A stretch of DNA of 64,000 bases from Guillardia theta CCMP2712 (lineage: Eukaryota > Protista > Cryptophyta), in the NCBI RefSeq assembly GCF_000315625.1, contig NW_005434527.1:1-64000 (forward strand), given 5' to 3'. Both the position numbers and the translations under genes were made by a program. The first letter of the stretch is position 1. The number at the start of each line of letters is the position of its first letter. The notes below the pieces were generated by a model. The model saw nothing but the letters and a program-made list of their open reading frames with translations, was not told where the DNA came from and ran no database searches. Positions 1 to 17,618 of the stretch are shown piece after piece.

Positions 1-52
1 TAGGCACGACCGTCGAAAAGGATCGCAAAAAAAGGGGTAGCCCTTCAAATTC

Positions 53-8906: not shown

Positions 8907-9872
8907 CTAACCGTCGGGTGACTCAGGTGGAAGAGCCTGCAAGTACGGAGAGGGCGACCACGTATATTGGTGCGGCCCCCCCGTTTCCTTGTTCGCCGAG
9001 CGATCCGCCAGCCACCACAGAAAGCGCAACGCATCGTCCTGCAAGAGGCCATCAGTGCTGGCGATGATGGGAAGAAAGGCCTTTGGCGGGACGTGCTGAG
9101 CATATGCATTACGATGCCCTCGGATCTTCCGCTGTGCTGCCGCTTGCAGTTTGCTCCGAGCGAGGTCCGGTATTCCATCATTGTCAAACACATGTGACAT
9201 GCTGAAGTCCAGGATTAACCCATGCCATCCGCCGCCAGTAGCCATCAGTTGTGGAAGTTCAAAGTCCCCTACATGATGATCTTCCGGGCCATGTTGGGAA
9301 ACGTTCTGCCTGGTGCCGGGTACGCCTTGCACGTGGACGCGGCATCTCACTCCGGAATCTTTGATGAGGGTACTGAGGACGGCATTGCACTTCTCATGCG
9401 CATCAGTCCATAACTGGCTGCGGTGCCTGCAGGTTGCCATGTGTGTGGTCCCCCCAGGATGACGGAGAAGATGATGGCATCGATCGCAGTGCGGCGGGAG
9501 GTCAACCGGCAATCCATGAAGAAACTTGTCAGCGGCAGCCACCAAGCTGATGGGCTGCTGCTCAAAGATCCCAAGGTTTGTACTTTCCATAGTCGAGTGC
9601 CAAATCGTGCGCTGAGGGGTAAACTGAGACAGAAGTTCATCAACCGGGTGGCCTGGTACTCGAAGGGGAGTAGAGAAGCTGGAGTGGTGTGCCAACAAAG
9701 ATCTCTGGCGCTCAGAAAGGTGAGCCCGAATACTGCGGAACCGAGGAAACTCCGAGAGGAACTGAGCCGTGAGCTCCCGCTGGGCGGGGATGAAAAGCAC
9801 ACTGCCCGACGTCCCAAATAATTCAGGCGAGGGGATCCAGCCATTGTCGCACGCCTGAGGAAGCTCCGCCAA
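8907..9872 (-). mobile_element. Non-LTR retrotransposon fragment (CRE-like), Zn-knuckle + restriction-like endonuclease domain, RT missing
   Basis: CDRC...H...C knuckle, AHEK, GD...LILDFSMSH, AAAQRKIRGHRNAY, FLPIIASTDG. This motif order matches the C-termini of RLE-type LINEs. Confidence 0.7.
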
Positions 9873-12769: not shown

Positions 12770-15497
12770 CCTTTAAACGACAAAATTTTTTGTCTGGAGT
12801 GTAGCGATTTCGGCAGTTTCAGAGCTGCAAGTGCCTCATGAAGGGGGTGGGGGGTAGTTGAATGAGAGATAGTACGGGGTTGATGCGCTAGTCTAATCCT
12901 GATATAAGATGGGTGGGGGTCATTTTGGAGTAGGTGGGGGTTTGCAATAATCGCAATGGTGGCGCGCGCATGCTGGCGAGGAGAGCATCCAGTTCCACAG
13001 TAGCAGCACCTCGTCAGCCTGCAGAACATCTCCACGTATTGAGAGATAGATTTTATATCAATTTCTAATCTAAGGTGAATGATATCTTGATTGTGTGAGG
13101 TACAACATTCTGTTTTCACCATTTTTTGAGCCGCCAACCGCTGTAGATTTACATTTAGAAGTACCATGCCGGATGATTTCGGTGTGCTGACTCGCTTCTG
13201 AAGCAAAGTTGATCTTGTACAAATGTTACTAAAAAGGATTCATTTCTTAGCTATATTATCTTATACCATTTCACCGATGTTGATCTTGGTGCTCCTGTAA
13301 GCAATTTCTACGCGACGCTGGTCCGCAGATACCAAATGGTCTCTTAAGAGGATCATTCTTGCTACAAAGTGAACAACAGAAGGTAGTGTACAAACCCTTT
13401 CCATTGCCACTTCGACAAATCCTGCATCTCACTCTTTTCAACCGCTGTGCATTACCCACTTGTGTACTTTGTTGGATGAAAGATCGAGCGTGGTCGTCAA
13501 CAAGTATCAGTTGGTGATCATCCAACGGCGCTTCTGCTTCATGACTGTCATCATCCACGCTGGTATCTGTGCTATCCTGTCCTCCTCTTCTTGGAATCGA
13601 TGAATCTGGACAACCTTCGTACGAATTTCTCATCAATGCTTTGGCCAGGGCGTCAGTAAACAGGAAAATCTTGTATGCATCCACTTCAATGAACCCAAGT
13701 ATCGTACAGAACATTCTGAATCTCCAGTCATCAGTTCCAACTTTTTCTTCCAGTCCCAGTCCACTCTGTCTCAGGTGATTGTGCACATCGATCACAGATG
13801 CTCCGTTGAAATATGACTTGATCATGGCCGTTCTTGGCGTTGACAGTGTTTTTTTCTTCCCTGTTCCTGGCTGGGTATCAGGCCTGCCAGGTTCATTCCA
13901 TGCATGCCCGAAAATGAACATTTCCCTGCCATTATGCTGCCATGAAGTTGATACGGTCTTCGTAGCACCTCTTGCTGCACTAGCCTCCCATGCATCCTTG
14001 TTCAGATACTATGATTGTTTTGGAAAGCCTCTGTGACATTGTTTGACCAATCCTGTGAAAAAAGTGTTCCTCTCCAACAGAGCTTGTGCAGTTGACACTG
14101 ACGCAAAAGCGGAATCTGCGTAAAGAATGTGACCCTGGTTGAAGTAAGGCTTCATCAATCTGAGAACCCATGATGTATGCTTCGGATATTGATCAGTAAA
14201 TTCTTGATTCTCCATCACTCGTTTGCCTTCTTGTAACCGTCTAGCTGCAACATAATTCCGTAGGTACACTCTGCAATGTTCTTGTACTCACTGCCAATAC
14301 CTTGTGGTTTTCGGGCAATTTTTGTTAGAAATGGGATTCCATCATCAACGTCCTTCATACAAAGTCAGTCACACAAATTTCCAACACAATATGGTAGGAT
14401 ACCTCAGCAACTGGTATCCATTTACTGGCATGCTTTCATCCAAAATCAATTCAGATCCAGGACGAATTGTTTGCAATCTGTTCGCATTGAAAGCGTGTAT
14501 AAGGGGTCGGATACAATTAAAAGCATTGTCTGTAATGTATGCATACGGAGGAGCGAATTTTATGTGCTTTCGCCATTGTTCCAATCGAAAACGACTGACT
14601 CCAAAGCGCTTACCCAAATCAACAGGCGGACTGGCAGAGTCGTAATCGCTGCCCCATAAACTCCTTATTGGACCGTTTGGATGTAGAGTTCTCATGAACA
14701 ACACCGTGACCCATGAACTGAAGCCATTCATGTACAGTGAATGGTTTCACATTTGCTGGCAAAGAATTGTCCGTCCAGAGCAAACAACATCCAGTTTCAT
14801 CACAATCTCCGAAAAAATACTTCCACGGAAGCAGAAATTTCCACTGCAATCAAATGGAGTTTTCTCGTCAAGGATCCTGCAGAGCTGGTGTCCAGCGAAT
14901 CACAGTTTTGCGCATTGCAAATCCACTTGACAGTCGTTGATCTTCTGCAACACCAGTCGGTGATAACTGCCAAACGAGGACATTTTCTCCAAAATTGCAA
15001 TTGATGGTCATAGGCGAAGAGGAATCATTTTCATGGTTTGATTCCCCTTGCATAGGGACAGGGTCATGATGAGACACCACTACATCATTAGAGCCAGCGT
15101 CATCGGACGCGGCTACATCGCGGGCAGCGGAAACATTGGTAGAATTTTGCAAATTTGGCACTGTTTCCCCAGGCAACAATGTGGATCGTTTCACTATCAC
15201 CTTTCCAGTAATCGCGACGGAGTTCCAATCGCATCTATGCACGCCCATGAGAATGCTCTTTGCAGGCCTGAAACGGCCAAAAATCTTACTTTTCACAGCT
15301 ATCTCCTGTCCTATCTCGACAACGGGTTGGTCGTTTGCAACGCGAATTTCAGCGTTGGAAAGTTCTTCCTCCCCTCTTCCTTCCCCTGCCATTTTCCCCG
15401 CCTTTATGCCCTTCCAAGGGGGCTGTATGAGGGCTCGAAAAAGGGACTCCCCGGGGAGTCCGGGATTCCCAGGGGAGGCCTTTGTCGATTTTAAAGG
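12770..15497 (-). mobile_element. piggyBac-superfamily transposon, decayed
   Basis: TTAA at 12766-12769 and 15498-15501; termini CCTTTAAA(AT)CGACAAA; encloses transposase fragments. Confidence 0.88.
13271..15392 (-). pseudogene. piggyBac DDD transposase, multiply frameshifted
   Basis: ILDESM, KPQGIG, LYADSAFAS...FFTGLVK, IDVHNHLRQ and a C-terminal Cys-rich domain (CRIC...CSLC...C...H), spread over different frames. Confidence 0.85.
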
Positions 15498-15727
15498 TTA
15501 ACTTCGAAACCACCGGTAACCCTAAAAACCACCCCTCCTTTTTACCAAATCTCATACACACTCACTTTGAGTAAAGGGACTCAGGGCCGGTCATTAGTGT
15601 CAGTGTTAACTTCGAAACCACTGGTATTCCGAGTTTACCAGCCTTTTAAGTCCCACCCCCAGACATTTCAGTGACCTCTTCATATTCGTCTCCGCATCCA
15701 CCTATCCCCACCCACCTTCCCCACAGC

Positions 15728-16858
15728 ATGTCCGCGATACCGTGGCAATGTCCTGACTGCAAGGCAAGACAGCAGCGATGAGATGCTATTACCTTCACTC
15801 TCATACTTGATTGAGATGCTTTCTTTACTCCCGTACATCTTTTCCTTTTGATCATTCACTTGCTTTGTGTTGGCAGCTCCTGCTCTTGCTTTTTCTACTC
15901 GAAGCACTTTGATGGCCTCCTGACTCGAAATGCTGCAGATCATCAATGTCGATCCTGGTACCTATGACAAGGCTACTTTCAAAGCTGGAGCCGAAGGAAA
16001 GTGCGAGAACTGCCCGAAGCTTGAAAACGATCATTATGGATCATCCAAGTTCTGCTCCGTAAGGAACCGTTCGCTCAGGGAACGATCGGCTGACATGAAT
16101 GTTTGCGTTTTTATCGGTTATTGCTTGGATGGACTGTCGATGATGCTGGATAGTGGGTAAGTGAAGCTTATGAAAGATGCAGGGGACGATTGGCTGACAT
16201 GTCCTTTGCAATGTCTGCTGTTTCTGGGTGGATGGATGAAACTTGGGCCTGACAGCGAGTAAGTAGCATATGCTATGATGCGCTCAGGGGACGATTAGGC
16301 TGACAAATTTTTCAGACCTTCGTTCTGGATGACGATGGCACCTGCAAGAAGTGTAAAGCAGAGGAGGAAGATCACGTTGGCGAAAAGAAGATTTGCCCGG
16401 TAAACCCAATCATTTCTTCAACGATGCGGTCAGGGGACGATAGACTGACATGTATTTTGCAAATTCCTGGTTTATCCTTGCTTGCATGGATCAAATTCGC
16501 CTTCGTAGGACGTAAGTGTCATATCATATGATGCGGTCAGGGAATGATTGGCTGACATGGTTTTCGTTTTTTGTTGCAATTTTTGGTTCTCTCGTCGGAT
16601 GGGTTGTTGATTGGGCTGGCTAGTATGTAAGTTACAATCATGAATGACGCGGTCATAGACTGACATGTACTTTGCAAACTCTGTCGTTGCTGCTCGGACG
16701 GATTGAACTTGGGCCTGGTAGCGTGTAAGTTATGATTATGAAATATGCGGTCACCGCATGTTTCAATCAAGATACTTATCACCTATCCAGACCCAAGTGT
16801 CCCTTTGTTTTTCTTGCAGCCATTAGGTAATGTCACAATTTGCAAATCATATATATAA
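15728..16858 (+). CDS. Small Cys/His zinc-finger-repeat protein gene with five 3-nt microexons
   Basis: Two 28-aa paralogous modules, TFKAGAEGKCENCPKLENDHYGSSKFCS (ends 16058) and TFVLDDDGTCKKCKAEEEDHVGEKKICP (16316-16399). Microexons at 16154-6, 16256-8, 16509-11, 16624-6 and 16722-4. The 5' and 3' gene ends are uncertain. Confidence 0.6.
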
Positions 16859-16877
16859 TTCAAATTAGATCCAATGC

Positions 16878-17270
16878 CTAGATTTTCACCATCTGTAAGG
16901 TCTCTTGAATAAACCTTAAAATGACATCATCTTGAACTTTCAATTGATCATCTATATCTTGAAGATATCGCATCAAAGCAATGACTGCTTCCCTAGTAGC
17001 TGCAGCTTCTATCATGGACGGAATAGCAAGAGCTGAACCAGCTAATCCGCCAAATATAGCACCAGCGACAGCTGAAACAACAGAACCAGCCAATCCGCCG
17101 CCTGCTGTGATTGCATCGGCCCCTGCCTGTGCTGCGTCTGTTGCTGCATCCCTTGATGTGCTGAAGAGATTTTAAAAGCTTCCATTTTCCAAAGCAAATT
17201 TAATTGATGATTTTTCAAGATCAAGATCATATTTCAAATAAATTAACATTCTCATTTGGTTCATGATAAA
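16878..17270 (-). pseudogene. Gly/Ala-rich glycine-zipper-like ORF with an in-frame stop
   Basis: ORFs 17172-17462 and 16878-17093 are in the same frame, separated by a TAA; GGGLAGSVVSAVAGAIFGGLAGS. Confidence 0.35.
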
Positions 17271-17618
17271 ATTTGTTGATTGGAAATTGATGATCGGCCC
17301 GACTCTCCTCCCAGGTTCCCCCCACTGTCCACCTCTCAGACCTGACTTGAGCCTCAAGCGCGAGAGGGGCCTGCGCCGGCCTCCTCCGCCTCCATGTCGA
17401 CTTCCTCCCTCGAAGGCGCTTGCCCTTCTCGCTGCCTGCTGGAGCTTCTTGTTCCCTTGCACCCGTGACCAGGACTGCTCGCCGAAATAACCTCGCTATG
17501 AAGGTTGCTTGCTCTACTTATGATCAGGCATCAAAGCGATGAGTTCTGAACTCGCTTGCTCCACTCCGTCATGTTTGTTTCATGCTTGCAAAGTAACAAC
17601 AGCCATCAGGAATCCAAG

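Follow-up and report, generated by a model that had tools for sequence, protein, structure and literature searches.

The window, a 64,000-nt stretch of the Guillardia theta genome, raises the question of whether exons of a single codon can be real and, if so, what a gene might do with a row of them. Five 3-nt segments lie between an acceptor and a donor at one locus, and the original prediction took them to be microexons, each behind a dedicated intron with a distant branch point. Our answer, which taken as a whole we judge quite probable, is that the locus is a truncated relic of a family whose members carry one-codon exons, include them mostly constitutively and diversify a protein loop at the DNA level, and that the relic itself is now read in antisense only. 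The parts of the locus are listed below (plus, forward strand; minus, reverse strand).

15728-15763, plus: exon 1 (MSAIPWQCPDCK) with a GC donor at its end, as read from the sequence
15939-16058, plus: in-frame fusion of family exon 2 with the module-A exon, through a deletion at about 15969/15972
16059-16156, plus: cassette 1, with intron 16059-16153, branch A 16093 and the 3-nt exon TGG (W)
16157-16258, plus: cassette 2, with intron 16157-16255, branch A 16197 and the 3-nt exon CGA (R)
16259-16399, plus: 84-nt module-B exon 16316-16399 behind a short intron (16259-16315) whose branch A is 12 nt from the AG
16400-16511, plus: cassette 3, with intron 16400-16508, branch A 16448 and the 3-nt exon GAC (D)
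16512-16626, plus: cassette 4, with intron 16512-16623, branch A 16555 and the 3-nt exon TAT (Y)
16627-16724, plus: cassette 5, with intron 16627-16721, branch A 16663 and the 3-nt exon CGT (R)
16725-16753, plus: start only of a sixth cassette, broken before its branch point; every paralogue alignment ends at 16753
16753-16796, minus: breakpoint, with 43 nt of a family cassette in inverted orientation
16798-17267, minus: dispersed repeat unrelated to the family, with five other copies at 80-91% identity

The predicted splice sites are all in place. Each 3-nt segment (16154-6, 16256-8, 16509-11, 16624-6 and 16722-4) follows an AG acceptor (TAG, CAG, TAG, TAG and TAG, in order) and is directly followed by GTAAGT. 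The branch points had been placed 58-68 nt upstream, behind AG-free spacers, and the distances from the CTGAC branch A to the acceptor were measured as 60, 58, 60, 68 and 58 nt in cassettes 1-5, with no AG in any spacer; the 12-nt distance claimed for the intron before the 84-nt exon was likewise found. The cassettes form a tandem repeat with a unit of about 105 nt and are homologous to cassettes at other loci, each composed of a distant-branch-point intron and a 3-nt exon. Only four other YAG-NNN-GTRAG sites occur on both strands of the 64 kb, and none is preceded by CTRAC within 90 nt. Of 15 background intron-like sites in the window, 14 have the branch no more than 20 nt from the AG.

The genome (87,145,349 bases in 669 contigs) was then searched with the pattern CTGAC-N48-72-YAG-NNN-GTRAGT. 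This gave 282 matches against 77 in the reversed control. The same distant-CTGAC pattern with a 4-nt exon gave 49 matches against 69 in the reversed control, and the 3-nt exon pattern with a near branch point 49 against 65; because neither variant is in excess, the enrichment belongs to the combination of 3 nt with a distant branch point alone. Outside this family, four possible 3-nt exons at G000 C105:50023-57083 and two at G000 C271:7949-8480 have ordinary near branch points. As judged by the C105 sites, 3-nt exons in G. theta may not strictly depend on a distant branch point.

Arrays on about 18 other contigs match the window region, and divergent arrays of the same layout lie on yet more contigs; the family comprises at least 20 loci of G. 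theta. Its repeat unit is an intron of about 105 nt plus a 3-nt phase-0 exon, in tandem at 70-95% identity, and zinc-finger-like module exons of 84-90 nt can be interspersed. When exons at 20 loci, including the window, were called from the first AG that follows the branch motif, 188 of 207 donor-to-donor segments gave an exon of exactly 3 nt. Among the other 19, six are CC exons of 6 nt, which are conserved, and four are module or ordinary exons; in the remaining nine cassettes an additional AG is present or the branch motif was picked wrongly, and most of these nine still finish with AG-NNN. The longest run among the loci read has 18 successive 3-nt exons (C308). The 188 exons use 39 codons and encode 19 amino acids. 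Stops are absent from them, where position-wise base frequencies predict about nine TAA or TGA and 90 of the codons are one step away from one; codons ending in AG are absent as well. Exon length is fixed, while the donor-to-branch length (31-66 nt) and the branch-to-AG length (41-76 nt, mean 59) drift, with branch points predicted from the CTGAC-type motif.

Across the family, the proposed tie between the distant-branch intron and the one-codon exon is upheld, since the mean of 59 nt in the 188 cassettes compares with 10-13 nt in the 16 introns before module exons of 84-90 nt. A TTGCAA/TTGCG mark near the usual acceptor position had also been singled out. It is seen, but only in about half of the family: TTGCAA/TGCG lies near BP+10..14 in 90 of 188 cassettes and is displaced further downstream in the fourth unit of the window, and TGC is found near BP+10..14 in more than half of the cassettes. 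A spacer hairpin that would pull the branch point to the AG was rejected as a specific feature, the 170 spacers examined showing no excess folding over dinucleotide shuffles (mean z +0.18).

Divergent codon arrays were noted at C116:129660-134035 and C92:11877-13285, and also on C33, C56, C60, C12, C14, C41 and C66; the introns of the C116 array are purine-rich, and its 3-nt spacing is kept over at least 4 kb. Further truncated relics of two cassettes each are L045 (C21) and L047 (C167), the one on C21 occurring twice, 3.5 kb apart.

Set beside its paralogues, the window copy is incomplete. Both the M-x3-CxxC exon 1 with its GC donor and exon 2 are found, with C269 and C150 as the nearest paralogues of exon 1. 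The exon-1 pattern ATG-N9-TGY-N6-TGY-NAG-GCAAG has 22 matches against 0 in the control. The family start codon (ATG-CCG) reads ATA here, at 15737-15739, and an in-frame ATG sits 9 nt upstream of it. Paralogue alignments stop at 15969 and resume at 15970, which is the basis for calling the deletion that fused exon 2 with module A and removed the family's first codon array. Module A has the motif F-x5-G-x-C-x2-C-x3-E-x2-H-x6-C, taken from the alignment, and the module-B exon carries the same CCHC-type motif. The flanks of cassette 3 (codon D) are 95% identical to those of paralogue cassettes whose codon is E or G, and those of cassette 5 are 99% identical to a C228 cassette with codon H in place of R.

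At the 3' end the prediction fails. Its last intron (16725-16819) contains no CTRAC and family homology is gone beyond 16753, so the proposed '...R-PL' junction is not a family feature; the terminal exon 'PL' falls in unrelated repeat DNA. No closing CC exon and no effector exon (ROCO-TIR or kinase) was found near the locus, the window has no effector match, the Roc-COR tandem domain is absent from this copy, and a Pfam search of both window exons returned nothing. A stop-free model of about 97 residues, ending PLGNVTICKSYI, can be built from it. We read the window locus as a 3'-truncated, probably non-functional copy of the G. theta one-codon-exon family.

Several mobile or repeated sequences surround it. 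A piggyBac-like remnant lies at 13271-15504 on the minus strand, with a weak DDE_Tnp_1_7 match at 14372-14746 (E 0.017) and a Cys-rich C-terminal frame at 13271-13921; its end adjoins TTAA near 15500, about 230 nt upstream of exon 1, and for 15400-15504 there are copies at 98% identity on C154 and C19. A 22-nt direct repeat (15497-15518 and 15605-15626, 108 nt apart) also precedes exon 1, and the upstream segment of paralogue C269 is likewise duplicated. The dispersed repeat at 16798-17267, whose other copies are on C184, C94, C322, C164 and C23, is transcribed and drives the antisense RNA described below; its Gly/Ala-rich frame of 94 residues on the minus strand has weak C19orf12 and Tic110 matches. 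Further away, a 321-residue frame at 8907-9872 on the minus strand resembles by eye the zinc-finger/endonuclease end of a non-LTR retroelement and has no Pfam match.

Four runs from four studies, presumed to be RNA, were aligned on 15500-17400; one of the four was sampled at 6% and has reads of at most 60 nt. None of them holds a sense splice joint of the window copy, and none supports its stop-free model. Contigs cross 15616-16500 ungapped, the sense introns being retained in an antisense transcript:

15807-17163, minus: antisense polyadenylated transcript over the whole putative relic, with joints in X1, X2 and X4 and an oligo-T end in X20

Raw reads pile up beside the oligo-T loose end at 15807, which corresponds to the poly(A) tail of a minus-strand RNA, and three GT-AG introns are spliced from the minus strand (16501-16556, 16616-16664 and 16715-16782, seen as CT..AC joints in all three contig runs). 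First mates lie on the minus strand, which usually denotes plus-strand RNA, but tail and intron polarity both indicate minus. The RNA begins near 17150 in the dispersed repeat. As the 94-residue frame (17162-16881) stops at 16880, ahead of the array, the array is a 3' non-coding part of this RNA. The antisense introns are cryptic, the reverse complements of CTGAC and GTAAG being donor-like and branch-like; cassettes are spliceable on both strands because the donor motif is nearly the reverse complement of the branch motif. In 112 of 188 cassettes an antisense AG lies exactly 12 nt after the antisense CTTAC. This AG stems from a CT 8 nt before the sense acceptor, kept in 86% of family cassettes. 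The window copy itself is apparently unexpressed.

The claim that the 3-nt segments are exons, which finds no sense-spliced RNA in the window copy, is borne out in the family. Successive 3-nt exons are spliced in order in the sister genes C206 and C23. For C206, a contig loose end of run X1 contains a retained acceptor followed by Y-E-S-G and the first base of module A, and one of run X2 contains M-G-S-P and a retained intron; for C23, a loose end of run X2 contains T-G and a retained intron. All three spliced strings match the predicted joins letter for letter and are absent from the genomic loci read, a check that covered the family loci read in the genome; the unspliced form of one of them is also present in X1. 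The support amounts to three short contig ends from two genes, in which the codons are joined in genomic order (4/4, 4/4 and 2/2) and none is skipped; the runs yielded no transcript of full length. Combinatorial skipping, as originally envisaged, thus has no counterpart in any of the three strings. The sister-gene RNAs are partly spliced, a neighbouring intron still being retained on either side. A further C206 contig of run X2 joins Y-E and continues 62 nt inside the next intron (a loose end behind 16252), with an odd joint at a non-AG position 16 nt past the branch A; it is one contig, possibly an assembly artefact.

Script-based splicing by rule gave open models, all in phase 0, for eight paralogues, seven of which continue into an effector exon; the C308b model meets a stop after the conserved part, probably through a missed donor. 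The models run in the order M-x3-CxxC, a 13-residue exon ending in KC, A, the codon string with optional modules, CC-x-C and CxxC, and intact members share the scaffold M-x3-CxxC-x12-C-(variable loop)-CC-x-C...CxxC followed by the effector. Domain searches, run exon by exon, identified Roc-COR-TIR effector exons in C228, C150, C23 and C72, kinase-PARP in C234 and C221a, kinase-RING in C206, and in C118 a kinase with a caspase-like frame just downstream. The codons had been seen as linkers between zinc-finger modules, which is partly right; mostly they make up a loop between conserved cysteines, of 8-18 residues in most paralogues. Public protein models begin at an internal Met downstream of the array, in keeping with the expectation that gene predictors would miss one-codon exons, and a database search for full-length transcript-derived proteins with codon strings gave only downstream-starting annotation models or nothing. 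By eye, the N-terminus of the spliced models is CxxC, with no signal peptide or secretion of the schistosome MEG type.

Homologues without codon arrays were found on metagenome contigs (L050-L056). Those on P0006/L050-L054 and L055 are intronless, and L056 has ordinary introns. They run from a Cys-rich start through a short linker, one or two modules and a variable stretch to CC-x-C, CxxC and a coiled coil. The intronless homologues repeat the family's cysteine scaffold and modules, and 11-14 residues take the place of the last array, which provides independent support, from outside G. theta, for the reading frame and for inclusion of the loop. P0006 has an in-frame TAG within the coiled coil, and L056 has, by eye, an extra ubiquitin-like N-terminus and a SAM-like end. 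For the fold of the Cys-rich domain, ESM Atlas features, AlphaFold (mean pLDDT 53) and Foldseek on the intronless homologue L055 gave low confidence and no match. The spacing of a RING finger, C-x2-C-x(9-39)-C-x(1-3)-H/C-x(2-3)-C-x2-C-x(4-48)-C-x2-C, does not fit: the third Cys is followed by 8-18 residues in the models and by 11-14 residues plus modules in the intronless homologues, and there is no fold match.

The codons and their flanks evolve very differently. In cassette pairs with less than 5% flank divergence (mean 2.6%), 34% of codon bases differ, and 72 close pairs hold 42 amino-acid changes against 2 silent ones. Codons thus diverge about 13-fold faster than flanks, a descriptive figure given that the pairs lack independence. 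Twelve different codons occur among the 32 near-identical cassettes of one cluster, and cassette blocks recur across different genes, in different orders and in tandem duplicates. Loop diversity looks to arise at the DNA level, through cassette shuffling and diversifying selection.

These data bear on other readings of the array. An expressed small zinc-finger gene at the window locus, with combinatorial isoforms from skipping of codon subsets, would be in keeping with its five intact sites and branch points, the stop-free model of about 97 residues, a frame that skipping would preserve and about one plus-strand read within 15948-16075. We nonetheless find it very unlikely, given four runs with no sense joint and contigs ungapped over 15616-16500, a last intron that has no CTRAC and an acceptor inside an unrelated repeat, and the three sister-gene strings spliced with no skipping. 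The same strings weigh on whether intact members also vary the loop by regulated skipping, as Dscam or MEG genes do, besides DNA shuffling. Every exon is symmetrical, so any skip stays in frame, and the partly spliced intermediates indicate that splicing order is not fixed; yet all codons in the three strings were joined in order, a result that excludes only dominant skipping since contigs drop rare variants. Such regulation in addition to shuffling is unlikely.

Barely credible, in our estimation, is a non-coding satellite or decayed element that kept splice-like motifs by descent alone. It would agree with tandem repeats of about 105 nt at 70-95% identity and with public models that start downstream, but a 3-nt spacing fixed while other spacings drift, the lack of stops, the exclusion of AG, the non-synonymous excess, the layout kept in divergent arrays and the spliced junctions in RNA all speak against it. 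A minus-strand gene with exons of about 50 nt would draw on the three antisense GT-AG introns, spliced in three studies, and on the 112 of 188 cassettes with the regularly placed antisense AG. The antisense exons, however, are 50 and 59 nt long and follow the stop of the only protein-like frame, the branch-to-AG lengths are unimodal and not 3n-periodic, no conserved minus-strand frame was seen across paralogues, and reverse-complementary motifs make cryptic antisense introns expected. On the unimodal lengths and the position of these exons behind a stop codon we rejected minus-strand coding of the array, which is extremely improbable.

For the reading we prefer, one-codon exons in a family of which the window holds a relic, the following mechanism is proposed. 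The branch point and a U-rich tract would lie about 59 nt upstream, behind an AG-free spacer, at a distance that could keep branch-site recognition from clashing with U1 on the donor 3 nt past the acceptor; the first AG would then be located by scanning, and inclusion of the codon would be mostly constitutive. Look-alike introns could undergo unequal crossover and gene conversion, by which single residues would be added, deleted and swapped in frame, with selection then diversifying the codon. The loop may be the surface with which intracellular receptors for immunity or cell death sense a ligand, a role suggested by the effector domains. The same recombination-prone layout would have produced the relic, by internal deletion, truncation and a small inversion, and the relic would now be read only in antisense, from the neighbouring repeat. 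A bolder version, in which G. theta has a dedicated system of single-residue diversification for immune receptors, with intron recombination (possibly somatic or with regulated skipping) building the loops and with relics and antisense RNA acting as cassette donors or regulators, we regard as rather doubtful.

Up to 18 successive 3-nt exons at the loci read are a limit case of exon shuffling, and they offer a natural substrate in which to ask how an exon that cannot hold both complexes is defined by the spliceosome. They point, too, towards a candidate immune-receptor family of a unicellular alga, fast-evolving and unannotated, with one swappable sensor in front of TIR, ROCO, PARP, RING and caspase-like outputs. 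The window copy shows how such genes break.

Animal neural microexons are mostly isolated and tissue-regulated, and SRRM3/4-type regulation is not known outside animals. Those dependent on SRRM3/4 have a strong branch point and pyrimidine tract far from the AG, an AG-free zone and often UGC after the tract (bioRxiv 10.1101/2024.09.17.613571), and distant-branch-point exons are known in animals (PMC1431707), as are isolated 3-nt exons. The G. theta family shares the predicted distant branch point (mean 59 nt), the AG-free zone and the UGC motif, and differs in having up to 18 such exons in succession that evolve as a repeat array.

In Schistosoma, MEG genes have exons of 6-81 nt (3-81 in the abstract), mostly 15, separated by introns of 0.1-5 kb, and encode secreted products diversified by alternative splicing (PMC10526429). 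The likeness lies in series of 10-20 very short exons, symmetrical for the most part, that encode variable proteins and are missed by annotation. In contrast, the G. theta exons are uniformly 3 nt and their introns are homologous repeats of about 105 nt, no skipping is seen in the three short strings, and the products look intracellular.

A close parallel in gene design is with the Ectocarpus genes for LRR-ROCO and for NB-ARC-TPR proteins, candidate receptors built from shuffled, positively selected phase-0 repeat exons that in some cases remain in inverted orientation, in genes that often arise and die out (PMC3341825; PMC11378527). Both sets include Roc-COR genes with a variable N-terminal part made of repeated phase-0 exons, and shuffled phase-0 repeat exons under diversifying selection are found in the G. 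theta family as well, on descriptive evidence from pairs that are not independent. The exon, however, is a 72-nt LRR or a 42-residue TPR in Ectocarpus and one codon within a Cys-rich domain here; 72-nt LRR exons are absent from the family, whose exons are 3 nt or 84-90 nt and have no LRR Pfam match. Unlike in Ectocarpus, one and the same sensor in G. theta is found in fusions with TIR-bearing ROCO, with kinase-PARP and with kinase-RING effectors. A literature search for G. theta microexons and ROCO genes and for single-codon or tandem microexons, among papers readable without subscription, returned no description of one-codon-exon arrays. The arrays of one-codon exons appear to be new, while the logic of the distant-branch intron has animal precedent and is not new in principle, and the family is an extreme variant of exon-shuffled candidate receptors.
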